The notes under the pieces were generated by a model. The model did not search any database and was not told the DNA's origin. It worked only from the letters and a program-made list of their open reading frames with translations. A stretch of 64,000 bases of DNA from Octopus bimaculoides (Eukaryota): assembly GCF_001194135.2 (NCBI RefSeq), contig NC_068982.1:37392680-37456679 (forward strand), given 5' to 3'. The translations under genes and the position numbers were made by a program. Below, piece after piece: positions 1 through 64,000 of the stretch (position 1 is its first letter; each line of letters begins with the position of its first letter).

Positions 1-627
1 CCACAGGATTTTGCAATTCTCGTTTTTGGGCACTCCTTCTGGAGTTTGCTCATACCACATCTTTGCTCTTTGTTGGCCATTGTTTCCACAGAGCACCCAA
101 TGGATCATTCTTGCCACATTGTCATGGCGTCTTTTGGATTTGCATTGCGCCAATTTTGGGCATTTGCTAATGATGTGCCATACCATTTCACTGTATTGGC
201 GTTCACATCTCTTGCAAACTGACCATACATTTTCTTTTCCTTCCATGCTTTTTCTTTTTTTTTTATTCATTTCTTGTTTAAATTTTTTTTTAGTTACTCA
301 ATTTCAGTGTTTTTTATATACCGCCCTAGGCTGTTTTTCTCTGCTTCGATACAGTCCTGGCAACTGATTAAACCTCTCACACCCTTTCTTCTGGACAAGT
401 ACAGCCTATCTGTCACTGTTAGGGTGGAAGGCTCTGTGTACTGTCAACATTTTTCTGGTTCTGGTATCCATTTTCTTCACTTCGCTCTTTTGCCATTTTA
501 TAGTTCTCGTTCCATACCAAAGTAATGCTATCGCACACGTATTAACTGCTTGGATTCTATTCCGTCCAGTCAATTTTGAACTCAACACCAACCTCAGTCT
601 TCAGAAATACTCCATCCTCAGTTGCTC
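1..627 (-). mobile_element. Decayed 5'-truncated R4/Dong-clade non-LTR retrotransposon (post-RT region, CCHC knuckle, start of restriction-like endonuclease); runs off the window
   Basis: Minus strand reads [23 protein letters not shown]...[34 protein letters not shown]...HIISKCPKLAQCKSKRRHDNVARMIHW...ENCKILW, with frameshifts and deletions. Confidence 0.8.
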
Positions 628-1501: not shown

Positions 1502-1659
1502 ATTTGTTTCGACTAATTGCTGATGCAAATGGATTTGCAGACCAGCGGAAACTTGGCTTGTTAATTCATGACTGTATGCAAATACCACGCCAACTTGGTG
1601 AAATTGCCTCATTTGGAGGAAGTAATATTGAACCAAGTGTCCGCAGCTGTTTTGAAAAG
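1502..1659 (+). CDS. DMD: Dystrophin exon (EF-hand region; human exon 67 equivalent, 158 nt, phase 1-0)
   Basis: ttcaacag acceptor, AAG|gtaagt donor; [52 protein letters not shown]. Confidence 0.96.
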
Positions 1660-1980
1660 GTAAGTGTCTTATCTCTCATTGCCGATTAATATACACGCAT
1701 ATTTTCCAATTTAAGTTTGAATTTTGATTATTTCATGCCTCTCCACCTTTTCCACTTATATCAATTTTGTTCATACTTGCATATAAGGATAATCATTTTA
1801 TGTCTAGACAGCAATGTTATATCATCATAGTGTTTTTGTTACCAGGCACACCTAATCAGCAAAACATGCATAGTTAGAATTTCATTATGGAATACTTAAC
1901 ATTTTCTTTCAAAATTTAATGCTTCCTGATGTTTACCTGTATGTGCATATGGTTGTATTTGTGTGCATATACATAGTCAT

Positions 1981-2997: not shown

Positions 2998-3409
2998 TAT
3001 ATATATATAAAACCTAAGTACATACATACAACACAACAAAATAAATCAAATGAATTAAACAAATAACTAAAACTATTGAAATGGAATATTTTACTCATTT
3101 ATAACTAGATAATAAACAATACATATACAAAAACAAAGTAAAATGAACAATGCTTTTTGTGAAAGTCCTTTTTTAGTTCACACATATATGAATGCTAATG
3201 GTGCACATTCATATACACAAACCACCCCAACTCTCTCCCACAAACATGTACACACTGCTAATTGTTGTATGTGTGTTTACACATCAAAGGCATTCATATA
3301 TATGCATGTGCTTGTAGCATTCACTCTCTCTTGAACACTTTTACCATTCCCTTTCCACAGCATGACAAATTTTTTTATACCACTTGAACTTACCATTAGC
3401 ACTTTAATA

Positions 3410-3860
3410 CAATACATTCTATCAAGACTTGGAAAAAAAATGCCACTTCACAAATCTACTTGCATTGTTGTGATGGGAGATTTCAATGCAAAGGTCAGAA
3501 AAGAGTGACTGAGCAGGAAATGTGTTAGAAAATTTGGATTGGGAGAGAAAACTGAAACAGGTGAACATTTTGTCACCATAGTAGGAGAAATGAAGACTTC
3601 CATCAAAATCCATGTGATACACCTTGGCAGATAGTTGGTTTGGAGTTAGGCAACAGAAAGTATGTGAAGAAAATCAGGAGCAACAGCTAATGGAGGAGTG
3701 AAAGAGGAAAAAAGGGAGGGAGTGAGAGAGATATAAATGAAATATAGAGAGAAAAAGAAGATTTAAGAAGTCACAGTAGCTGGATAAATCTCTTAAGATG
3801 ACAAAATAGGCTGTGTGTACTAGAATTATAGATAATTCTAAGTAAAAAGATGTGAACACC
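3410..3860 (+). mobile_element. Decayed LINE apurinic-like endonuclease fragment (RTE-like)
   Basis: FYQDLEK...IVVMGDFNAKV...KFGLGEKTETGEHFV; GDFNAK is the APE motif. Confidence 0.7.
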
Positions 3861-7991: not shown

Positions 7992-8158
7992 GCAAGTAGT
8001 CATCCTGAAATTCAAGCCGCTCAGTTTGTTGATTGGATGCGACTAGAACCACAGTCAATGGTATGGCTACCAGTTCTTCATCGGTTAGCAGCTGCTGAGA
8101 CTGCCAAACATCAAGCCAAGTGTAACATATGTAAAGAATTCCCCATTATTGGCTTCAG
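7992..8158 (+). CDS. DMD: Dystrophin exon (end of EF region and start of ZZ; exon 68 equivalent, 167 nt, phase 0-2)
   Basis: catttcag acceptor, AG|gtaaga donor; [56 protein letters not shown]. Confidence 0.97.
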
Positions 8159-11100
8159 GTAAGATAAAATTTTTCAAGATAATTTTTGTTTCATTTTCTA
8201 TTACATTTTTTTGTACACATGGTGTAGGGTTTTTACACAGATTCTAGAGATATAGTATTTGATAGAAAAAATCTTGTTGTTGCCATAAGGATATGGATAC
8301 ATGTAGTTACAACTTTTAGGTTTATTTTTAAAATTTACTCATGTTAAGCATATATAAAAGTTTGTTAGGGTGTTTTTTTTTCTTTACATTTTGGCTCTGA
8401 GAAGGAGATATTTAGCTAACATTGCTTCATATACTTTCATTATTCTCGTTGTGCTACCCTAACTTTTTTGAAATATTCAAAGATTTCACCCTTCATATTA
8501 GACAGAATGAAGAATTCTAAATTAATATTGGACTCAAATCACACATATACATCACTGCTGAGCAATTGCAGTACTAAATATTATTTACATCAATCTATTA
8601 AGCTGATTAATAATGAGATTAGTTTGTAGCTTAAATAAGGAACAAAATTTGTTTGATATTAACTGGTTAAATTTTAAAATCTGAAAATATCACAATATGT
8701 GGAAAAGAAGTTGTGTTGATTAAGTCTTACACCGCATTATTATCTTATGTTTTATAGTTAGAACAACAGTTTAATTGAAAATCTATAAGACTTTATAGAT
8801 TTTGTGTGGAACCTATTTTCCTTTTTTTTTCCCACCATTGCTATAAAATGTTCTGTTTTGAAAACTAGCTTATAACAGTCAAGATTATTCTATTGATGGG
8901 AAGTAACTCAGTTGACTTTAGATAACCTTTTTTCAAACATAGAAATTTGTTATCAAGAATCCATAAATGAGCGTCTACATAAGTTACTTGACTTATTATA
9001 CTGACAATGACATCTTTGAACGAAAATCCTGTCATAAATATCAAGATTGCATTTTTGAAATCTTAACCTTGATGTATCTTTAGCACAGAAAAGTTATTAT
9101 ATATAGTTGTGCTATATATAATCAATGAACTCTTAATTTGATAAGTAAAAATAATGTGGGGAAAAAATGTTATTGTAATCTTATGATTTAACTTTCCTAT
9201 ATGGAGTTATAGATAACAAGTTTAAATCAAAACTTATAATGGTTTGATTTGTACTTTTTAAAAGATTTTCAAAATAGAAACAAAAATTCATAATGTTTTT
9301 TCTTACTAGTATCAGTCATTGAACTGCAGTTATGCTGGGGGACCACCTTTATGGGTTTAGTCAATGCAAACAACCCCAATACTTATTTTTAAGTTTGGTG
9401 TTTATCATGTCAGTTTTCTTTTTGCCAGACTGCTTATTTAAGGGAGTATAAACAAAATAATGCTGGTTGTCAGTAAGAGCCAATGCACACACACACAGAC
9501 TTACCAATATACTTACAATGGGCCTTTACACAATCCAACCAAGATACTGAACCCTAAACCCAAAGATATGTGATTTCCAAACAAAATTGTTAACCACACA
9601 GCTGTAGCATCACCGTTGTTTATCACTAACTTAAAATTTTACTAACAACCATGGTTTTTACATCCAACCTATATCCCATTTGTTTGTGGCATCTGACTGG
9701 TTTCACTTACTTTGATTCAAATAATAAACATACTTACCTCAAACTATGAATCATAGCACTTATGTTTGGTCCATTTAGTTATATTGTGCATATTATAACA
9801 CCTAAGTGGTCATTAGAAAACTTGGGTTTTCTAATAGGAACTGAGTTGGGGATGAAATAAAAAAATTTTAATCAACTGTCGAATTATTAAACTTTGATTT
9901 GATGGGTCATAAATGGAAATCTGTTTTGGTTGTCATTTAGTGGGGTCCACTCAGTCATAACTTTCTCCCTACCAGTTGTGGACAACGCCCAGAAGGAAAA
10001 AACAGCAAACAGCACTACTCTTCCTCTGTTTTTTTTCATACTTTCATTTCTAGATTGAACTTGAAGAGGCGGGAAAATTCATGTTCAAAAATAAAGTTTG
10101 ATTTTATATTGATATGTTAGATAACCAGAAATGTTATGTGAATGCAATAGATGTGCCAGTTTTGAATGTGGCAAAATAAGTGATAAAATGAAAGTTATTT
10201 TTATGAGAAAGAACACTTTAGTGATTTTCTCTAGATGGAATTGGTGAGAATTAAGTAAATAAGTACTGTTGGCTAGAAGTGGATTAAAGTAGAAATAAGT
10301 TTTTTAAATGTTGGTCTAAATAAACTACAGTGTTTTTGCTTTGAAAAACATTAAGAAGTCACATTTAAATAGTCAAATTTTAATGTCAAAACATGATTGG
10401 TTTTATAAATGTTATTTTAATCTCCATTCTCTTACAAATGTGCCACAACCTATGTTTAAGCAAAAAGTTAATATAGAAAATACTATTTTAAAATTTCCTA
10501 TCTATAGCAGTTTACACAATTTGAATAAAATATTTCTGTATATGAGCTCAAATAAATGGTTGTCCTGCAATTTAGTTTTTTCCTTTTATTTAAATATAAT
10601 GGCAATATTTCTAAGTAAATTTAACGTTGTTCCATTACTGATTTAGTAATTAAGCTAGTTGCTACTTCATTTGATACTATTGTTCTTACTTTTGCTATTG
10701 ATGTTTTTTAGCTACATTTACTTCTGCTGTTTGAGATCATCATTTCATACAATATTTCTTATGATGAAAATATTGTTTTCTAATTTTAGCAACCAATGTG
10801 CTTTATTTCATAATTATTTTCGCTAGTGACTTTTAATAGAAATAAATTCTCCATCATTGTGATTTTAAAGTGCTCTAAGTAAATAAAAAGAAATGATTTT
10901 GTTCTTTACTCTTTACATTAAAATCATTTATTGTTTATGCAAATAAAATTCTTGATATTGGAAAATGTATTCTTGCTGTTTTGATAGTATTGTGACCTTA
11001 AGAAAAACAAATAATGTCGTCTTAGTTTTCCAGATGCTGAAAACACAAACTTTCTGATTATTTGCACTGTTTGAAGTTTATTTTGAAATAATTTAGTCAG

Positions 11101-11971
11101 GGAAGGAGAAGCAGTGTTGGTGACCTTTGCAAGTCTTCTCAGATTGATGAAATTGATGCATCCTTTGCCTAACTTGAAATTCTAATAAAAACAACATGGA
11201 TGGGGAAGTAACTAGGGGTTCTGGTTCAGATGCTTTCAATAGACGTTGCTAAGGCATTAAGGTAGTCAAATAACTATCTTAACTTCCTCTACCCACAGAA
11301 GCTTGTAGCCCATGGCAAGTTAACGCTTCATTGTGCTAGGAAATCTTTAGCTTAGGTTAAGTGATAGCTAACCTACTCAATGTGACAGTTTCCCTAGTTA
11401 TCCATGTTTATCTGTTATACCAGATGATGTAGGCATACCAGTCATAAATTGTTTCCTTTTTTAGTCTGATGTTCTGTATGGTGGCACTGCTACTGGCTTG
11501 TATGTTTTGTGGCAATGATTGAATACAAAACAAGGTATCCTGAGACTAATAGCATCACTGAGCTTTCTTGCTTTTTACACTAGCCTGGCCTTGTGAATTA
11601 TATGGAAAATGGTGAAATTTCCAAAGATCTACTATACAGAGAACTTCCATGTAGCACCAATCTATAAAATCTATGCAGTTGTAGACAAGAAAATGAGAAG
11701 CTAAAACATTTTTTTTTTCTCAAAAGTGGCACTGCTAGAAGTAGATGTGGTGAGGAAATTCACATTAGAAAACAAAATTGGATGACATAATTTACTAAGA
11801 TTGTAAAGCTTTGCTGCTCTTCTTATATTAAAAGCACTCTGTCTATTTCAGAAATTAAGACATATATTTAAATGATTTTATAACAAGAGTGCTTAGTCAA
11901 GTAAGAAAAATATAATACAATAATATATATACATGTGTATGTGTGCATATATATATATATAAATAATATAC

Positions 11972-11989
<18 letters not shown>

Positions 11990-12006
<17 letters not shown>

Positions 12007-12810
12007 TGCATATATGGGTACATTACCAACAGTAAACAACGTGAAATATGAAAGCAAATGAGTTCAATATGCAAACAACGAAAGAAACAAATAGAAAACA
12101 GGGCAAGTATCATAAAGAACGACCCTTCATCAGTTGTCAGCTGTCTATCTACTCCTCATTTCGAGCATTGAACGACAATATGAGTCTTCAAAGACAGTTG
12201 CTTCCGTAAGTACCAAAATAAAATTTAGGATTTATGGAGGGTCAAAGTTGGGAACAAAAACAGGACAGTGGAGACATACAAGGAAACCGAACAAAAACAA
12301 ACATGGTGGATCATTAGACCAGAACAAGGATAAAATAACAAACACTGGAGAAATATTTTCTTTGACAACAGAAAAGATAGAAGAGAGAGATTGGATACGT
12401 ACTGTCCTTAAGACAGTCCTGAAAGAAAAGATGATCACATGAGGAAGATGGACGATGGTCATGTGTGTGCAACGAGAGAGAGAACAGAGAAAGAGGAAGA
12501 GAGACAGGGACAGATAGAAAAACGGTGAAGGGGATGAAAAATGGGAATTAGAGGAAGGATGAGAGAGAAAACAGTATAGAGTAGAGTCACATCAAAAAGA
12601 TAAAGATAAATTTACTTGGAAATGGATGCGTGGTGTTCAATCAAATAACAATATAAATAATATACACATGCATATATGGGTACAGGATGTCACCAACAGT
12701 AAACAACATGAAATAGGAAAGCAAATGAGTTCAATACGCAAACAATGAGAGAAACAAATGGAAAACAAGACAAATAACATAAAGGATGACCCTTCATCAG
12801 TTGTTGGCAA
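11990..12810. repeat. Two direct copies (~12000-12140 and ~12660-12805) of an interspersed repeat; class uncertain, possibly Penelope-like
   Basis: cacatgcatatatgggtac...caccaacagtaaacaac...gcaaatgagttcaata...gacccttcatcagttgt occurs twice; a related inverted copy lies at ~13520-13630. Confidence 0.7.
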
Positions 12811-13719: not shown

Positions 13720-14586
13720 TGAAATCTGATCAATAAGTATCCGGACCGTTGCCATAGTAACAAGGCTGAAGCATGCAGAGTGAAGCTGCTTGGCACAGAT
13801 TAACCTTGAACTCTGCTGTGCATGCACACTAAGTTTTAACATTCTAGATCACTTCCGCTGTTTATAGCTGTGCTTGGAAGGAAGGTATGTAGTGTGTGAC
13901 CATGACAGAGAAAGTTGTCATGGTGATACCTGCTCAGAGCCCTACACAAAGTTACAGAAAGTGTTTGGAGAGGAGTGTATAAGCTTCACACAAGTGTATG
14001 AGTGGTTCAGATATTTCCAAGATGGCTAAAAAATGTCAATATTGACGAACATTCTGAGAAGCCCACAACCAGCAGAACTGAGAAAAACATTGCAGCTGTA
14101 AGGGGAAATTGTCGAATAACCATCCGTGAGTTATCAGAGGATGTGCAGATTTGTTATTGTCCAGTTCAGTCCATTATCACTGAAGATCTGGGTATAAAAT
14201 GCATGTCTGCCAAGTTTGTGCCAAAACTGCTTTCAGCTGACCAAAAAGACACTTGGGGTTTCAGTTGCACAAGATCTCCTTGATTGTGTCAAGATTGATC
14301 AAACCTTTTTGGAAACTCTGCATAGGTCTCTGAGCAGGTATCGCCAAGCTTTTGGCAAAATTTGATGCAGATTCTCTGCTCAACTTTCTCTGTCATTGTC
14401 AATGCAATGATCACATGCTACACACCTTCCTTCCAAGCACAGCTGTAAACAGCAGAAGTGAGCTAGAACATTAAACTTAGTGCACATGGATAGCAGAGTT
14501 CAAGGTCAATCTGTGCCAAGTAGCTTCATTCTCCATGCTTTAGCTTCATTACTATAACAACAGTCCGGATACTTATTGATCAGACC

Positions 14587-24773: not shown

Positions 24774-24885
24774 GTATCGGTGTTTAAAATGTTTCAACTT
24801 CGATGTTTGCCAAAACTGTTTTTTCTCTGGGAGAAAGGCTAAAGGTCACAAGTTGAGCCATCATATGCAAGAATACTGTACTTCT
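24774..24885 (+). CDS. DMD: Dystrophin exon (ZZ zinc finger; exon 69 equivalent, 112 nt, phase 2-0); missed by the ORF track
   Basis: ttttctccag acceptor, TCT|gtgagt donor; [37 protein letters not shown] continues the ZZ domain in frame. Confidence 0.97.
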
Positions 24886-25029
24886 GTGAGTATAATTTAA
24901 GTAAAATGGAACTTTTTAAAATGAGAAAAATTTTACCTAAAGTTTTAGGGTCTATTTTATATATCCCACAACCAATGCATGTTAGCAAATATATGATGAT
25001 AGCATGTACCATGCATTCACTGATTGTTT

Positions 25030-25344: not shown

Positions 25345-25682
25345 ATGAGTTTAGCATCTTTATGCTAAGCTTGTTAATTAAAGGGTTTGTGATATTGGCC
25401 TAGTTAGTTGTCAGCCTTTTCAAATTCTTAGTTGTTTGGGTGTACTATTTTCGATTTAAAATCTTTTGTCAACATTCCCTATTATAAAGAGGATTTAGTT
25501 ACTGATAGAAACTCTGATGTACTCTCAGTTGGTTACCCTATTCCAGAGATGTACTTGAACAAAACTCATTCGGGCTATCTAACATCAAGAAAAATATTTT
25601 GAAATCTTTGATGCCTGTAAAGATTTATTTCTTACAAAATTTACATCCCTTTATTGAGTTAATTTTTTTCTTTTCTTTGCAG

Positions 25683-25819
25683 ACAACATCAGGGGAGGAC
25701 ATACGTGATTTTACAAAAGTATTGAAAAACAAGTTCAAATCAAAAAGATATTTCAAAAAACATCCACGACTTGGTTACCTTCCTGTGCAGACTGTATTAG
25801 AAGGAGACAGTTTAGAGAG
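25683..25819 (+). CDS. DMD: Dystrophin exon (exon 70 equivalent, 137 nt, phase 0-2)
   Basis: tctttgcag acceptor, AG|gtagat donor; [45 protein letters not shown]. Confidence 0.96.
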
Positions 25820-33239: not shown

Positions 33240-34489
33240 TCAGGTCATTAAGAATGAAATGTCTGATTTTCTTATGCTCCAAGTTTGACAGTCGTTAACT
33301 TTAATGTTTTATTCTGACAATTCTTTGTTTTACAACATTGAAGAGTTACATCATCACTTTTCAAAATGCAATTCATGATGTCTGATTATATTGTGAGTTT
33401 TCTCTTGTAAATCAATTTTTGTGAACCCATGGATAGATAAAAAATTTGTGTTGTTTATGAATATGAATTCCATCACTGAACCAATGCATCCCAGACAGCT
33501 TGAAACATCAATGAGGTGTTTGGTGAAGGTGTGGTGAATGAGCACACTGTATGTCATTCGTTGAGAAGTTCTGGTTTGGTGACTTTACACTTGAAAATCA
33601 GCCCTAGACTAAGGTGGATAATGATAAGCTGGAAACTGTAGTGGAAGCAGATACATCTCAAACTACACAAGTTAGCAGCAAGGTTTGATGTTTTGATTCC
33701 AACTATATTGGACCATGTGAAACAAATCGGCATGGTAAAGAAGCTGGACAAGTGAGTACCGCATGAAGTGAACAAGCATCAAATGAGGTGTCATCTTGAA
33801 ACTTGCTGTTCTGTGCTGTCACGGCATAAAAGTGAACCATTTTTTGCATCGTATTGTTATGTGTGATGAAAAATGGATTCTTTTCAACAATACAAAGCGT
33901 TCTGCACAGTAGTTTGATAGAGATGAAGTATCAAAACACAAACCAAAAAAGAATATTCACCAAAAAAACTAATGGTGTCTGTTTGATGGTCCAGTGCTGG
34001 TGTCATCCACTACAGCTACATGAGGCGTGATAAGTCAATTACAGCAGATGTATACATCAACCAATTGGATGAAATGATGAGTGAACTTGCAATTAAACAA
34101 CTGAGATTGGTCAATAGAGACAGACCAATTCTCTTGCAAGACAAATCTCGAACACATGTTGCACAAAGAACGCTATTCGAGTTACAGGAACTGAACTCGG
34201 AAGTACTCTGTCATCCGCCATATTCACCAGACCGACTGACTATCACGTTTTCCAGGCATTAGACAACTTTTTGCAAAGAAAAAACTTCAAATCTGAACAG
34301 CTTTTCAGGATTTCATCACCTCTTGCTCTCCAGAATTTTTCACTGCCGGCATAAATAAGCTAGAGATAAAATGGCAAAATTGTGTTGATAATTTAGGTGC
34401 ATACTTTAATTAACTGCATTGCTTTTTGTTGAGATAAAGTAAAATAAACTTTCAGTTCAAAATCAGACATTTCATTCTTAATGACCTGA
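33240..34489 (+). mobile_element. Full-length (1250 bp) mariner with pseudogenised DD34D transposase
   Basis: Identical 31-bp TIRs tcaggtcattaagaatgaaatgtctgatttt; TA on the right and TG (mutated TA) on the left; motifs (W)VPHE, CDEKW, LLQDKSRTH, HPPYSPD; multiple stops and frameshifts. Confidence 0.95.
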
Positions 34490-39851: not shown

Positions 39852-39918
39852 AGAAGATGAACATCACCTTATAGCCCAATATTGTCAAAGTCTAAATGGA
39901 GATACTTCATCTAATGTA
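39852..39918 (+). CDS. DMD: Dystrophin exon (first part of exon 74 equivalent; syntrophin-binding motif; 67 nt, phase 2-0)
   Basis: ttttattag acceptor, GTA|gtaagt donor; EDEHHLIAQYCQSLNGDTSSNV, matching DDEHLLIQHYCQSL. Confidence 0.93.
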
Positions 39919-41243: not shown

Positions 41244-41335
41244 CTAAAAAGTCCTATGCAAATAATGATGGCAGTGGATGCTGAACAACGGTCTGAACTT
41301 GAAGCTATGATAAAAGACTTGGAAGAAGAAAATAA
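41244..41335 (+). CDS. DMD: Dystrophin exon (second part of exon 74 equivalent; coiled coil 1; 92 nt, phase 0-2)
   Basis: ttttcattag acceptor, AA|gtatga donor; [30 protein letters not shown](K). Confidence 0.93.
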
Positions 41336-42702
41336 GTATGAAGTAACTTCTTTTTTTTTTTTGTTGTAAATTTTAATTGTGTTACCAGTATCATCAAGCC
41401 ATGTAGATTTTCAGGTCTATATCAATAGCATTTAACCAACAAAATTTTTGTTAATTACTTCATTTATCAGAATCACCAGATGTTTCCTCTTTGGGTTACT
41501 AATGATCAGTTGAATTAGACATCAGTTGGACCTGTTTTCACTGGTCCCTGTATTTTTATATGGTACTTTTCAACTGAATCCGTTAATCTGTGTTTCTAGT
41601 TTAAGAAAGTATACTTATCTTGGTCCATGCCTTACTTAACATTGAGAGTCCTCTGTCTTCACAACTTATTGCCCAAGTGTGCAATTTGCTCTTACTAAAG
41701 TCATTTTATTAATAAACCTTTTGGACATTAGTGGAAGTTTTCAATCAAGAAATATTTAATAGGGAAAATTCAAATATTCAGAACAGTTTCTTATTTTACT
41801 GTGTTAAATGAAGGGGTATAAACTGAATTATAATATATTTTTATTTTAAAAACTGAAAATAGTAGTTAGTCTTTTTTAATAGCATTATAATTGTACAAGT
41901 GAGGAGTGATAAACTCTGTAGAATAATAAGATATATTTCTTCTGTTGTTTAATTATATATCTTTATAACCTGAATTTAAATTTAACAAATTAGTTTTGCA
42001 TGTCAATCCTCTAGGAATGTTCCCCTGGGTCAAGATACTAGTACTGCATAGACACCTAAAACAATTAGCCAAGGCATGGTACATGCTACCAAGAAATACT
42101 CACTTGCAAATGATAGCTATAATTCGTTTATAACTCTTTTATCTATGTCTTTACTACTATATTGATGTTTCATGTGATATGTTGTGTGTTATTCTCTGTA
42201 GTAACAGATTGTGTAATCTTGATATCATATTTATGTCAGTCCTAATGTACTTATTTTTATTATCATTTTTTATACTTTCAATTCCTCAGTCATTATATTT
42301 AGTTTCTCTAAATCTTTGTCAAAAATATTTTCATCCACTGGGAATCAATATTTCTATTAACATGCTCTTTAACTATAATATTTGGATAGTTTACTTTTAT
42401 TTTATCAGTATATACAGCTATGTCCTTAATATTATTAGTCTGTCATTTTTAGCTACAGTGGTTGATATGTTTACACCACTTGTTTTTGTATCAGTTCAAT
42501 TTTGTCTGCATAGTTTCCCATGTACATACTTAACTACTTTGATATCTAAGACCTTTTTTCATGTATGGGAATGGTTCTTGATTGTCTATGTTACCTGTTT
42601 TGACTGACAGAGTATTGACCTGTCCAAAGAATGTCTTCTCATACTTCGTATGTGTATTTTGTGTGCAAGATTCTTGATGTGGATATGTGTGTTGAAAGAA
42701 AT

Positions 42703-43774: not shown

Positions 43775-44003
43775 AAATCTTCAAGCGGAATATGACAGAC
43801 TCTGTCAATCTCAAAATTCCCGCGAAAGTAGCCAAGGAAGATCTGATGAAGAGGCTGCTGCTAACAGAGATGCTGAGATGGTTGCTGAGGCTAAATTACT
43901 ACGACAACACAAAGACAGGCTTGAGGCACGAATGCGCATTCTTGAAGATCATAACAAACAACTTGAATCACAACTACAGCGACTGCGCCAACTTTTAGAA
44001 CAG
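43775..44003 (+). CDS. DMD: Dystrophin exon (exon 75 equivalent; coiled coil 2; 229 nt, phase 2-0)
   Basis: aacttcag acceptor, CAG|gtgagc donor; NLQAEYDRL...[45 protein letters not shown]. Confidence 0.96.
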
Positions 44004-44114
44004 GTGAGCAAAGTTTTTTAAAACAGATATTTTGTACAAAATATTCTCAGCAACTATTTTTGATATTGCTCTTGTTTTGAAATGATTTATTAAAAGTAAA
44101 TTAAACACTTTCAG

Positions 44115-44277
44115 CCACAACCAGATCGTAGTACAGTATCTGTCAATTCATCTGCTCGGACATCACCACTGACTACTCCATCTTCATCAGTCAGTTCCCT
44201 TCCCTGCGGTCCTGTTCGGTATCGTTTTAACATGCAAACAGAAACAACAACATCTTTGTCAAATGGTCGAGATCATT
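44115..44277 (+). CDS. DMD: Dystrophin exon (Ser/Thr-rich; exon 76 position; 163 nt, phase 0-1)
   Basis: actttcag acceptor after a 111-nt intron, T|gtgagt donor; open frame PQPDRSTVSVNSSARTSPLTTPSSSVSSLPCGPVRYRFNMQTETTTSLSNGRDH; phases fit both neighbours; low sequence conservation. Confidence 0.82.
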
Positions 44278-45006
44278 GTGAGTATTTTTTTTTTCTTATA
44301 CTTTGTCTATGCTGAATTATATATTTTGAAGAAATTATGTTCTTACTCACTATTCTAAATAGAATGCTATCTTTTACTTTAATATCTCCTTTAAAAAATT
44401 AAAGTTGCACTATCTAGCTGGGATGGGAAAAAAAACAAATATTAAAAAAAAACAGTAGTAAGTTCTTAGAATTTGGATTGTTTCAAATTATTTTAATATG
44501 AAGAAAAGCAACATAAATTCCTCAAGGATTTGGTTAAAACAACTCTATATTTTGTACATGTATATTAAATATATAAATTGAGTAGCTAACTAGTAATGAA
44601 TTTAACTACAGTTTTAATGGAGACTCACAGCTGGCTAAGTTAATAAGTGTCTAATTATATTATACATCAGTACCCTTAATAAAATCACTTGTTTTCTCAA
44701 TGTTCAGTCCATCTTACTTGTAAATAAGTACTAGGAAACATCGTTATAAAGTGTCTCTGTTGTAAGCTGTTGAGACACTTTATTGTGATGTTTCATTAGT
44801 CTGCATTGCTCAGATAACTGCTGTCAAGAAGACTATGAGGAAATCTTGTACACCATTATCTAAATCACTATATAAGAATGAAGCCTTTAGTGGTAGCTAA
44901 ATAATAGGTTACAAGGCATTGTAGTATCAATATTATATGTGAAAGTTAAATTATTTCTTACAAGTGCTGACATAACAACAGCTTCTTAATTGTTATTCTC
45001 TCACAG

Positions 45007-45084
45007 CAATTGATGGGGCACGCCATAAAAAAGAAGAAGAAATCATGCCTGAAATTCCAAGTCCACCTACTTATGAAGCACGTT
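45007..45084 (+). CDS. DMD: Dystrophin penultimate exon (78 nt, symmetric phase 1-1) carrying a PPTY motif
   Basis: Strong acceptor ttgttattctctcacag, consensus donor T|gtaagt; (S)IDGARHKKEEEIMPEIPSPPTYEAR(S); phases fit. I recognise no homology, so support is from splice signals and frame only. Confidence 0.75.
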
Positions 45085-45431
45085 GTAAGTAAAGAAAATT
45101 AATATTTCTTAATGTTTTGTTGTTGTTTTTATTTTGTGGGGTGGGGAGGGTTATAATTTAAATTTAAAAACCAGATTATTTAAATTCAGAAATTTAATTA
45201 TTTGCAAAAAAATTATATTAAAAACTTCCTTTAAATGTATTTTCATTTTATTAATTCTATTTTATATTTGAATCAGTTTGATTGTTGTTAATACGAGTCT
45301 CATATTTTCACCCATTATTTTTTGTTATTCAATGATGTTGAAATTATTCACAAGATAATACTTCTCGTATAAAGTCATTTAAATCTTAATACTGAATATA
45401 CTTTTTAAAGTAATTTTCTTTTTAATTGCAG

Positions 45432-45547
45432 CATCTAACAGTGTTGGCAACCTCTTCCATATGGCAGGCCAAGTTGGCAAAGCTGTTGGAACACTTGTGA
45501 CTGTCATGACAGATGAAGATGGTGTTGAGGAAGAATCCAAACAGTAA
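45432..45547 (+). CDS. DMD: Dystrophin last coding exon (ancestral hydrophobic C-terminus)
   Basis: tttaattgcag acceptor; SNSVGNLFHMAGQVGKAVGTLVTVMTDEDGVEEESKQ*, matching the human exon-78-skipped tail HNVGSLFHMADDLGRAMESLVSVMTDEEGAE. Confidence 0.94.
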
Positions 45548-47060
45548 ACTTACATCATGATCATGATGGTGTTTTCATCTTGGAAATTAAAATCCACAAT
45601 CAGAGAAAGCAGACAATGTTTCTGTTAGAAACGCATTGTTATATACTTTGATCCAAACTTTCAGTATCTAATGGAACCATTCTGTTGCTGCTCAAATCAA
45701 AATTTGTTGTCTAGTTTTAAGAGATTTAAACTAGAAAGAGTCTTCCATTCAATTTGACTAACAAACCCTGAAATATTAGTGCCACTGATGTATGTGATTA
45801 ATCAAATGTGACCATTTTCATTATCAATAACCTAAAGGAACTTCAAGCAATGAAGACATCTGTTTGTTTGTTTGTTTTTCTTTTAGTGATATATCAGGAC
45901 GTAGTTATGGTACTGAAATGATATTGAAAAATATTATTACTCCAGCAAGAATAAATATTGCTTTAAATTGACAACTACTGCTATCATAAACCCCATTACC
46001 ACTACCAACATTACTACTACTGTTACTAATATGTTTATCACTCCCACTTCTAAAAACAATGCACATCAATATTCTTGGTACTTTCACTTCCATCAAGCTA
46101 TTATAAAAATCCTACTGAGACAGCAGTTTAACTAATTTGACCAACTAAAGTAAAAAGAAAAGCCTTTAGCAATTTAATCTACCCTTCTGGTTGTTGCCAA
46201 AAAGCATAAAAGTTATGTGCCAAGATGAATGCATTAAGCTTTCTATTTTATGTTTCAAAAGTTAAAACCAAGTGTGGTTTTATATGATGCTATGAATGTG
46301 TGTAGGTTTCACACATACATTGTTTCCCAAAGTTATCCAAACTAATGTAAATTCTTGTGTATATTTTCGTAAAGAAAAAGCAGAGAATATTTTATAATGT
46401 AGGATTAAGAAAGAAAAATTAAACTGTTTGAAATATGATTACAATCCCATCTACTAAAACTACTTGCATTTTAGACCAAGCAAAGCTTTTAAACATCTTA
46501 AATCTTTTATTTAGTCAAGATTCAAGAGTTCTCAAAAGCTAAATGAATATTATGGATAGATTCATAATGTATCTTGGTAACTGCAATTAGAAATGATTTC
46601 TGCAAAGATATGGTGCAATTTATAGAAATCTAGCTTTTTTTTTTTTATTATTTAATTTTTTTTTTTTTTTTTTTCATCTAAATGTTCAAAAAATCTGACT
46701 GAAATAGTGTCTTCAGTCCTCGGAACTGGTGCTACTGTTACTATTAAAAGAATATATTTATGTTGTGTATATTGAGTCCTAATTGTTATTATATACGTAT
46801 GTTAAACACTGCTGGCACAGATAAGTTCACGTCATCAATGGCCCAAATATTCCAGTGGCAGTGTTGTGGCAACTAATGTTCTGTAGTGGCTGTCATGTCA
46901 GTCAGATGTATTCCCGCGAGTACACTCGGACAATAAGCAGCTTAACAACCTGAGCTTCATCCATTATCTGCACAAGGACGTGTGAAAAGAAACAAAATTG
47001 TCGTATATCTGACTAAAGCTCAGTTTTTATTGAAATAAAAAAGTTGATCTATTCTAATTA
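45548..47060 (+). other. Probable dystrophin 3' UTR
   Basis: Repeat-poor sequence after the stop; AATAAA at 45950-45955 and 47034-47039, the latter followed by a T-rich tract. The true end cannot be fixed without transcripts. Confidence 0.45.
47034..47039 (+). terminator. Candidate polyadenylation signal AATAAA
   Basis: Canonical hexamer with downstream T/GT-rich sequence. The hexamer is common by chance in DNA this AT-rich. Confidence 0.35.
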
Positions 47061-62286: not shown

Positions 62287-62465
62287 NNNNNNNNNNNNNN
62301 NNNNNNNNNNNNNNNNNNNNNNNNNNNNNNNNNNNNNNNNNNNNNNNNNNNNNNNNNNNNNNNNNNNNNNNNNNNNNNNNNNNNNNNNNNNNNNNNNNNN
62401 NNNNNNNNNNNNNNNNNNNNNNNNNNNNNNNNNNNNNNNNNNNNNNNNNNNNNNNNNNNNNNNNN
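62287..62465. other. Assembly gap (N run)
   Basis: 179 N. Confidence 1.
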
Positions 62466-62994
62466 GCAGCCAAATCTTCTTCAAATCAAAAAAGGACGAT
62501 AGCGTAACAACGGCAAACAGGACAAAACACGATAGAAGGATCATTCGCAGCCAATTACCTCTTCAGTCGGAGTCTGGAATGTCTACGTAGTTTCGGCCAG
62601 TTATCTCCGATACTACTCAAAACCGGCGTGGCCAGGGACTTAAGCTAAAAGCATTAAGCCTCTGGGCAAGGCAAACAGATGTACGTATACAGGAAAAATA
62701 AGTAAACAACAGAAAGGATCTTTCGCCTATCGGAACGAATTTAACATACAAAATAGAATTATATGATGGACAAACGTCTTTAAGCTATACAGCAAAAGGA
62801 AAATTATTATAGAATTACAACAACAATAAAAGAAAACAAACAAGGTCTTTCGACTATCAGACAAGTGCGGTAAGTTAGCACAAGGAAAAGTCATAACAGA
62901 CCGGGTGGTAGGACAGAACAGATGCGAACAACCTCAAAGGCGGCGGGCCCAAACAGGACGACAACGCCTGAACTGGGCAGTGATCATGTGGTAG

Positions 62995-63311
62995 GGAGGG
63001 GAGGAGCAAGAGAGAGAGGAGCGAGCAAGAGAGAGGAGCGAGACAGAGAGAGAAGAGCGGCAGAGAGAGAGAGGAGCGAGACAGAGAGAGAAGAGCGGCA
63101 GAGAGAGAGGAGCCAGAGAGACAGACGACCGAGAGAGAGAGAAGTGCAAGAGAGGAGAGGAGCGAGAGAGGAGTATACATACCAATGTTGGCACGTACGT
63201 ACATCCATACATACGTACGTAGGTACGTACGTACATCCATACATACGTACATGGGCATGTACGTACATCCATACATACTAACTTAGGCACGTACGTACAT
63301 CCATACATGCG

Positions 63312-63347
<36 letters not shown>

Positions 63348-64000
63348 GAGAGCGGGAGAGGGAGAGGAGCGAGAGAGAGAGGGGATCGAGTGAGAGAGAG
63401 GAGGAAGAGAGGGAGAGAGAGAGAGAGGAGCGAGAGAGAGAGGAGGAAGAGAGAGAAGAGCGGGAGAGAGAGGAGCGAGAGAGAGAGGCGATCGGGTGAG
63501 AGAGAGAGGAGCGAGAGGGAGAGAGGAGCGAGACAGGGAGAGGAGCAACAGAGAGAGAGGATGAAGCGAGAGAGAGCAGCGAGAGAGGGAGAGAGGAGCG
63601 AGAGAGATGAGTGAGAGAGAGATGAGCGAGAGAGAGAGGAGCAAGAGAGAAGAGCATACATACTAACATAGGCACGTACGTACATCCATACATACGTACG
63701 TAGGTACGTACGTACATCCATACATACGTACGTAGGTACGTACGTACATCCATGCATACGAACGTAGTTACGTACGGACATCTATACATACGAACGTAGT
63801 TACGTACGTACACCCATAAATACTTACGTAGGTACGTAGGTACGTCCATACATACGTACGTGTGGACGTACGTACATCAACACATACTAACTTAGGCACG
63901 TACGTACATCCATACATACGAGAGAGAGACAGAGAGGGAGAAGAACGGGAGAGTGAGAGAGAAGAACGAGAGAGATTTGGAGAGAGAGAAGAACGAGAGA
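62995..64000. repeat. Compound satellite: GA-rich blocks alternating with TACG/TACA blocks
   Basis: gagagagaggagc-type units at ~63000-63170, 63330-63650 and 63920-64000; ggcacgtacgtacatccatacatac-type units at ~63190-63310 and 63660-63920. Confidence 0.92.

Follow-up and report, generated by a model that had tools for sequence, protein, structure and literature searches.

A PPxY motif retained among distant molluscs on an ancestral exon of the dystrophin tail

Introduction

Little is understood of what the far C-terminal end of dystrophin (the stretch of exons 77-79) does, and mis-splicing there matters in vertebrates. Near the 3' end of a dystrophin-family gene in the 64,000-nt stretch of genomic DNA analysed here (the window, to which positions refer unless a contig is named), a 78-nt exon encodes PPTY, which raises the question of whether the tail of this dystrophin carries a WW-docking site of its own and whether, as an initial annotation had proposed, alternative splicing could switch that site on and off. 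In beta-dystroglycan, the PPxY motif is a known target of the dystrophin/utrophin WW domain, which has a competitor for this site in the ligase WWP1 (PMC10739765).

Results

A molluscan dystrophin gene in the window

The gene in the window is the 3' part of a molluscan dystrophin gene, so called because its spliced model contains the Pfam domains EF-hand_3 (3.4e-36) and ZZ (9.1e-18) and its best annotated relatives are Aplysia dystrophin isoforms. The combination of EF-hand (PF09068/PF09069) and ZZ that marks the dystrophin/utrophin family is present in the model, with EF-hand_2 lying mostly upstream of the window, and tblastn and tail alignment recovered the coiled coil and the C-terminal amphipathic helix (VG.LFHMA…LVTVMTDE) of the same family. 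A 501-aa window model aligned with four of the five Aplysia californica dystrophin isoforms at 66-71% identity and 99% coverage, and with the fifth in a local alignment (60% identity over 76%); the Aplysia protein in turn matches the PDB dystrophin entries 9c3c, 8yt8 and 1eg3. The WW domain, spectrin repeats and CH domains would fall upstream of window position 1, and orthologues carry these upstream domains (WW in Aplysia; CH, spectrin and WW in Patella).

The window sequence is mollusc-type, possibly from a cephalopod, and not that of a heterobranch gastropod. Searching with the tail alone gave 13 candidate homologues, none of them a close relative, and an annotated cephalopod dystrophin was absent from all homologue searches run. 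A third search, with a profile of mollusc tails, found a 222-aa ORF (P0286) on a 1766-nt JGI metatranscriptome contig, L006, which matches the window exons between 24768 and 45548 at 78-90% nucleotide identity, collinear and intron-free, and continues into part of the 3' UTR. We laid out the gene by tblastn, initially with a human dystrophin C-terminus and later with Arion dystrophin from the database, giving the following features:

~713-800, + strand: EF-hand exon (tblastn)
1504..1662, + strand: EF-hand_3 exon (tblastn, Pfam)
7992..8158, + strand: exon in which EF-hand_3 ends and the ZZ zinc finger begins (tblastn, Pfam)
24775-24886, + strand: ZZ exon (tblastn)
~25668-25819, + strand: further exon (tblastn)
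~36.5 kb, 37.8 kb, 39.85 kb and 41.25 kb, + strand: further exons (tblastn)
43775..44003, + strand: coiled-coil exon, donor GTGAGC at 44004 (tblastn; L006 618-845)
44115..44277, + strand: S/T-rich linker exon, PQPDRSTVSVNSSARTSPLTTPSSSVSSLPCGPVRYRFNMQTETTTSLSNGRDH, phase 1 end, donor GTGAGT (L006 842-1005)
45007..45084, + strand: PY exon, 78 nt, phase 1-1, (H)SIDGARHKKEEEIMPEIPSPPTYEAR(S) (sequence; L006 mRNA alignment)
45048..45083, + strand: conserved core of the PY exon, PEIPSPPTYEAR, in L006 PEIPSPPSYEPR (Nei-Gojobori comparison)
45063..45074, + strand: PPTY, codons CCA CCT ACT TAT, a class-I WW-ligand consensus (PPxY)
45432..45547, + strand: last coding exon, SNSVGNLFHMAGQVGKAVGTLVTVMTDEDGVEEESKQ, stop TAA at 45545-45547 (tblastn, tail alignment)

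The S/T-rich linker exon, which ends …GAT CAT T before gtgagt, has homologues in the genomic contig L001 (GCA_013332975.1), the ENA contig L007, Aplysia, Arion and Elysia. Its otherwise variable sequence includes a second conserved island (44160-44235, TTPSSSxSSLPxGPxRYRF), also found in L006, L007, Aplysia, Arion and Elysia. The last exon is the ancestral amphipathic C-terminal helix, and a helix is predicted at this place in the Aplysia orthologue.

The exon and its junctions

Lying between the S/T-rich linker exon and the last exon, the PY exon proved real when its borders, frame and translation were re-read from the window sequence, in agreement with the initial annotation of a phase 1-1 exon at 45007-45084. 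The acceptor falls at 45006/45007 (...ttattctctcacag before the first exonic base, C) and the donor at 45084/45085 (T before gtaagt). One base from 44277 completes the 5' junction codon (T+CA, Ser), and base 45084 is passed to the last exon for the 3' junction codon (again T+CA, Ser). Skipping the 78 nt would indeed keep the frame, as had been claimed, with 44277 joining 45432 as ...NGRDHSSNSVGNLFHMAG....

The mRNA of a relative uses both exon junctions, because L006 aligns across them without introns: L006 842-1005 corresponds to window 44111-44277, 1010-1081 to 45011-45082 and 1086-1206 to 45434-45548, with the flanking exons directly adjoining the PY exon (L006 peptide, SSEGPRHKKEEDHLPEIPSPPSYEPR). 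Further upstream, L006 452-530 is an extra segment of ~79 nt with an in-frame stop, placed between the exons that match 39852-39917 and 41250-41339. Nothing in the window matches this segment, which could represent a piece of retained intron, an alternative exon or a poison exon.

An ancestral exon before the C-terminal helix

In mollusc dystrophin, the 78-nt segment is no novel cassette but a genuine coding exon of ancestral age. It corresponds to the conserved exon that precedes the C-terminal helix (vertebrate …LEEVMEQLNNSFPSSRG), and we identify it as the local version of this ancient exon because its position, 1-1 phases and alignments match in other animals. The exon order in L001 is that of the window (coiled coil, S/T linker, short exon, last exon), with a short exon of 111 nt and phase 1-1 at 9748-9858 (…YDEQELEDVMREIHDSFPPEPSK), and Elysia marginata (L009) has a 72-nt, phase 1-1 counterpart at 1526-1597 (DDPDLSGITAEINSPPHYSAVKAR). 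Position between the S/T linker and the last exon and phase 1-1 hold in all three, and the symmetry of the phases dates from the ancestral exon and is no special adaptation of this gene.

At the level of sequence, the window's EEEIMPEIPSPPTYE aligns with DVMREIHDSFPPE and KVMKEIQNSFPSE (MAFFT, tblastn), a short match that is non-significant without the positional evidence, and vertebrate EEVMEQLNNSFPS aligns with the same window residues. The pre-helix segment compared (…ELE.VM.EI..SFP…) is conserved across animals, appearing as LEEVMREVNSSFPPD in amphioxus, LDEVIRELNNFPDE in a crinoid, LEKVMKEIQNSFPSE in the metatranscriptome protein P0001 and LEEVMKEIQHSFPPE in the Logan contig L002; the tail of mouse Dp71f runs …LEEVMEQLNNSFPSSRG and then HNVGSLFHMADDLGRAMESLVSVMTDEEGAE. 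The vertebrate counterpart, which we take to be DMD exon 77 (93 nt in human), occupies the same position: its sequence (…EEDLLSPPQDTSTGLEEVMEQLNNSFPSSRG), followed by the alternative-frame tail of exon 79 (HNVGSLFHMADDLGRAMESLVSVMTDEEGAE), stands directly before the exon of the amphipathic helix. Both it and the window exon have an acidic E-[VI]-M-x-E-[IL] stretch and then S-(F)-P, and the acceptor of the last exon lies at the same place in vertebrate DMD and in the window, three codons before VG.LFHMA. The two differ at the motif itself, where vertebrate DMD reads NSFPSS, with no PPxY, and the window reads PPTY.

The helix downstream is the constitutive, ancestral C-terminus of invertebrates, which corresponds to the alternative frame of DMD exon 79 and which vertebrates translate only from transcripts lacking exon 78, an exon specific to vertebrates (PMC1790709). 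Vertebrates inserted this frame-shifting exon, whereas the window intron at 45085-45431 holds none of the kind and L006 joins the two neighbouring exons directly. We rejected exon 78 as the equivalent of the PY exon, since it is vertebrate-specific and frame-shifting (PMC1790709) and the PY exon aligns with the segment that precedes it. Chain D of PDB entry 9c3c (3696 aa) ends in the exon-78-skipped tail (…SSRGHNVGSLFHMADDLGRAMESLVSVMTDEEGA), that is, in the ancestral helix form.

Retention of PPxY among molluscs

Chance could account for a single PPxY in so large a protein, but not for its being kept at the homologous site of other molluscs. The site reads as follows:

Window: PSPPTYEAR
L006: PSPPSYEPR
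Aplysia: HAPPTYSAAKMR (APPTY)
Arion: NSPPHYSAIKAR (SPPHY)
Elysia: NSPPHYSAVKAR (SPPHY)
L008, a bivalve-like metagenome contig: NTLPPYTADRAR (LPPY, an LPxY)

The class-I WW-ligand consensus ([LP]PxY) is matched by PPTY at 45063-45074, and P, P and Y are conserved with a variable x and variable flanks (PPTY, PPSY, PPTY, PPHY and PPHY, plus LPPY). PPxY occurs at the same place in three heterobranch gastropods (Aplysia, Arion and Elysia), and the remainder of the exon is not alignable between these and the window/L006 pair. Loss of PPxY beside conserved flanks, named in the initial annotation as evidence against the motif, is not what we found: L006, the one relative available at a cephalopod-like distance, keeps PPSY while 8 of the 26 exon residues have changed. 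Because it is retained across distant molluscs, the PPxY docking motif probably does something.

Substitution patterns between the window and L006 point the same way. Synonymous sites are saturated (dS ~0.7 to >1.4, with the coiled-coil exon beyond correction), and in a Nei-Gojobori comparison the 12-codon core PEIPSPPxYExR showed six synonymous and two non-synonymous differences (dN/dS ~0.04), compared with a dN/dS of ~0.46 for the first 13 codons, the N-terminal half of the exon. Small as these numbers are over 12 codons, they suggest purifying selection on the motif core, a pattern typical of a short linear motif.

A count of PPxY motifs over 157,206 residues of retrieved dystrophin-family proteins, each 400 aa long or more, revealed 15, all of them (15/15) in the C-terminal tail; these comprise the mollusc site and a separate …[SA]PPQYTNGKP in seven Lepidoptera. 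The vertebrate tail has no PPxY, as the initial annotation had noted for human dystrophin, with mouse Dp71f and other vertebrates reading ...LEEVMEQLNNSFPSSRGHNVGSLFHMADD... instead. It is likewise absent from other, presumably lophotrochozoan transcripts (P0173, IPNSSYSTPK; P0198/P0294, with TSTSFSEEK in P0198; and P0290). The PP pair at the site is older than molluscs, occurring as SFPP[ED] in several phyla and within RPPPPP in arthropods. It may have been inherited from the older SFPP[ED], which would leave the Tyr and the loss of Phe as the steps specific to molluscs. In this lineage an old …E-[VI]-M-x-E-I-x-x-S-F-P-P-[ED]… sequence was probably remodelled into a PY motif ([SA]-P-P-x-Y).

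Inclusion and loss of the exon

The initial annotation suggested that the exon could be splice-switchable, a cassette whose inclusion or skipping by tissue or stage would toggle the PY site and leave the helix in frame. Its symmetrical 1-1 phases and 78-nt length do make in-frame skipping possible, and evolution has made exactly this join, from the S/T exon in phase 1 into the last exon, in Patella and L007; the protein model P0017 also lacks the PY segment. Alternative splicing is moreover known from the C-terminal region of dystrophin elsewhere, with Arion and Aplysia isoforms varying in syntrophin-binding repeats and vertebrates skipping exons 71-74 and 78 (PMC1790709). Against this, visual comparison with the consensus puts the GTAAGT donor and the long pyrimidine tract followed by cag level with the splice sites of the neighbouring exons, in contrast to the alternatively spliced DMD exon 78 with its atypical +3 pyrimidine donor (PMC1790709). 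The 1-1 phase, being ancestral, is no mark of this gene, and the PY segment is fused to a neighbour in L002 (the last exon) and L008 (the S/T exon), where it is not skippable alone. The sole mRNA of a relative, L006, includes the exon, as do all eight gastropod isoforms (5/5 from Aplysia and 3/3 transcriptome-derived isoforms from Arion), and no exon-skipping transcript was found among these transcripts of exon-bearing relatives. Given strong splice sites and inclusion of the exon throughout these transcripts and isoforms, the proposed switch is unsupported and we judge it unlikely; inclusion is all that L006 and the gastropod isoforms reveal of an exon that is ancestral, and on the available evidence it is constitutively included.

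The gastropod isoforms themselves (Arion P0013/P0157/P0158 and Aplysia P0168-P0172) differ only by repeated DEHxLIxxYxxxL units, which are syntrophin-binding-like, and these differences parallel the alternative splicing of vertebrate exons 71-74.

The exon-less, in-frame join occurs as evolutionary exon loss, not as demonstrated alternative splicing. In Patella caerulea (L010 72712-73236), the S/T exon ends in phase 1 and is followed by an intron of ~520 nt and then the last exon, without a PY exon, and both RefSeq isoforms of Patella vulgata show the same S/T-to-last-exon join. L007 has the same arrangement (10478-12455). Because a scan of the L007 and Patella introns found no hidden PY or SFP exon, the sequences indicate clean genomic loss of the exon in both, and because Patella and L007 lost the whole exon, the segment is dispensable in some molluscs.

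Candidate functions of the motif

The best reading of these data, and one we favour with somewhat more confidence than doubt, is that the exon provides a constitutive WW-docking site on the dystrophin tail. The PPxY, under purifying selection in a disordered linker before the helix, would act as a short linear motif that docks a WW-domain protein on the tail. Candidate partners would be ubiquitin ligases of the Nedd4/WWP type, Yki/YAP-type or other WW adaptors, or the WW-EF-ZZ module of dystrophin itself, with a Nedd4/WWP-type ligase or Yki-type adaptor as the generic expectation. From the PY tyrosine to the V/I of the helix motif (V/I)GxLF is a distance of 9-14 residues, and the helix is predicted to begin ~4 residues later.

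For structure, the Aplysia orthologue stood in for the window protein: we ran AlphaFold2 on P0168, a 681-aa isoform with a WW domain at ~28-58 and a single PPTY at 623-626, using an alignment of 121 sequences. WW-EF-ZZ was modelled with high confidence and the tail helix (637-666) with pLDDT of ~60, whereas residues 553-640 fell below 50 and the motif region was at ~25. The low pLDDT at the motif fits an exposed, disordered linear motif.

The initial annotation had also suggested that the tail mimics dystroglycan: its SPPxY would bind the protein's own WW-EF-ZZ module and compete with beta-dystroglycan, leading to autoinhibition or head-to-tail oligomers. SPPTY, SPPSY and SPPHY do resemble the SPPPY core of beta-dystroglycan (structure 1EG4), the short Aplysia isoforms combine an intact WW and a single PPTY in one 681-aa chain, the aromatic residues of the WW are conserved relative to dystrophin in 1eg3 and 9c3c, and the Aplysia model places PPxY in a flexible linker. 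On the other hand, AlphaFold2 gave no sign that the Aplysia motif docks onto the WW and no rise in confidence at residues 621-630, where pLDDT stayed at ~25 (a read-out of pLDDT without contacts, and as such a weak negative), and dystrophin's WW needs extended EF-hand contacts that a tail peptide may fail to provide. Self-binding of the dystrophin tail was also not reported in the full-text literature searched, and we consider the mimic improbable. A minor but real chance remains with a neutral origin, in which PPxY is a chance elaboration of an old proline linker and its conservation stems from a constraint other than WW binding, for example a role in capping the helix or in proline-directed phosphorylation of the Ser in S-P. 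The PP pair or a polyproline run is widespread at this site outside molluscs, several lineages have lost the exon, and the Aplysia motif has no Ser before PP, all of which would fit such an origin. It sits less well with the Tyr at +3, which is kept in five mollusc species over saturated synonymous divergence while x and the flanks change, with the independent PPQY conserved in the same tail of seven Lepidoptera, and with the lack of PPxY elsewhere in the sampled dystrophins.

Discussion

Relation to known WW ligands

Gene, exon and motif class are all of known kinds, and the conserved PY motif of the mollusc tail is apparently undescribed: a limited full-text search turned up no account of such a motif in either molluscan or lepidopteran dystrophin tails, nor of intramolecular WW binding there. 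A close relative in kind is the C-terminus of beta-dystroglycan (…RSPPPYVPP), which shares the S-P-P-x-Y core, a potentially phosphorylatable Tyr and a place in the disordered cytoplasmic tail of a dystrophin-complex protein. The mollusc motif differs in that it lies in dystrophin itself and not in the receptor, is internal and not C-terminal, and is a putative ligand. On the PPxY of mollusc dystroglycan, Adams & Brancaccio (PMC4582122) were of no help. Autoinhibition in Nedd4-family ligases, in which the LPxY of the HECT domain binds the ligase's own WW domains, likewise joins WW and PY in one polypeptide, as in the Aplysia orthologue, but the architecture is wholly different and no contact is evident in the Aplysia AlphaFold2 model.

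A WW-ligand motif before the ancestral helix provides a testable handle on this part of dystrophin, in the form of a peptide (HKKEEEIMPEIPSPPTYEARSSN), a point-mutant control and candidate WW partners. Binding to the WW module of dystrophin itself would put the motif in direct competition with dystroglycan; binding to a Nedd4/WWP ligase or to a Yki-type protein would link the tail to dystrophin turnover or Hippo signalling. Should the motif bind nothing, the finding would amount to routine annotation of the last exons of mollusc dystrophin.

A second PPxY in Lepidoptera

Seven Lepidoptera (P0203, P0206, P0207, P0211, P0213, P0214 and P0228, from Spodoptera exigua, S. frugiperda, Colias, Ostrinia, Leptidea, Pararge and Manduca) share …VMTED…[SA]PPQYTNGKP in the last ~15 residues of dystrophin. 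Both lineages thus carry PPxY in the C-terminal tail, the lepidopteran one being kept in seven species, but it lies after the helix and the mollusc one before it. Because of this location, the lepidopteran PPQY looks like an independent origin, and it offers a second natural test case.

There is a small chance that mollusc and, independently, lepidopteran dystrophins bear a functional PPxY that engages their own WW-EF-ZZ, in cis or in trans, or a WW protein of the Hippo/Nedd4 kind. If so, the dystrophin-dystroglycan link would be self-regulated or coupled to signalling, unlike that of vertebrate dystrophin, and repeated gain and loss of the motif (lost with its exon in Patella) would make it an evolvable regulatory handle on the complex.

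Other features of the window

Searching the window with Rfam at the gathering threshold gave no match. Assembly gaps appear as N runs at 2817-2997 and 62287-62465. Two ORFs, at 1-297 (- strand) and 3335-3505 (+ strand), resemble fragments of non-LTR retrotransposons, with a zinc-knuckle-like tail (…HIISKCPKLAQ…) and a GDFNAK endonuclease motif among their features, and have no Pfam match at E <= 0.01. Another ORF (14002-14280, + strand) resembles the HTH part of a mariner-type element, also without a Pfam match, and an intron holds the remnant of a mariner-type transposase (33987-34259, + strand; PF01359, E = 5.5e-10). At the end of the window, 62870-64000 is a purine-rich, low-complexity block of higher GC (41%), with RERERE/SLSLSL in all frames and interspersed (TATG/TACA)-type repeats; rather than a gene, it is probably a satellite or microsatellite.
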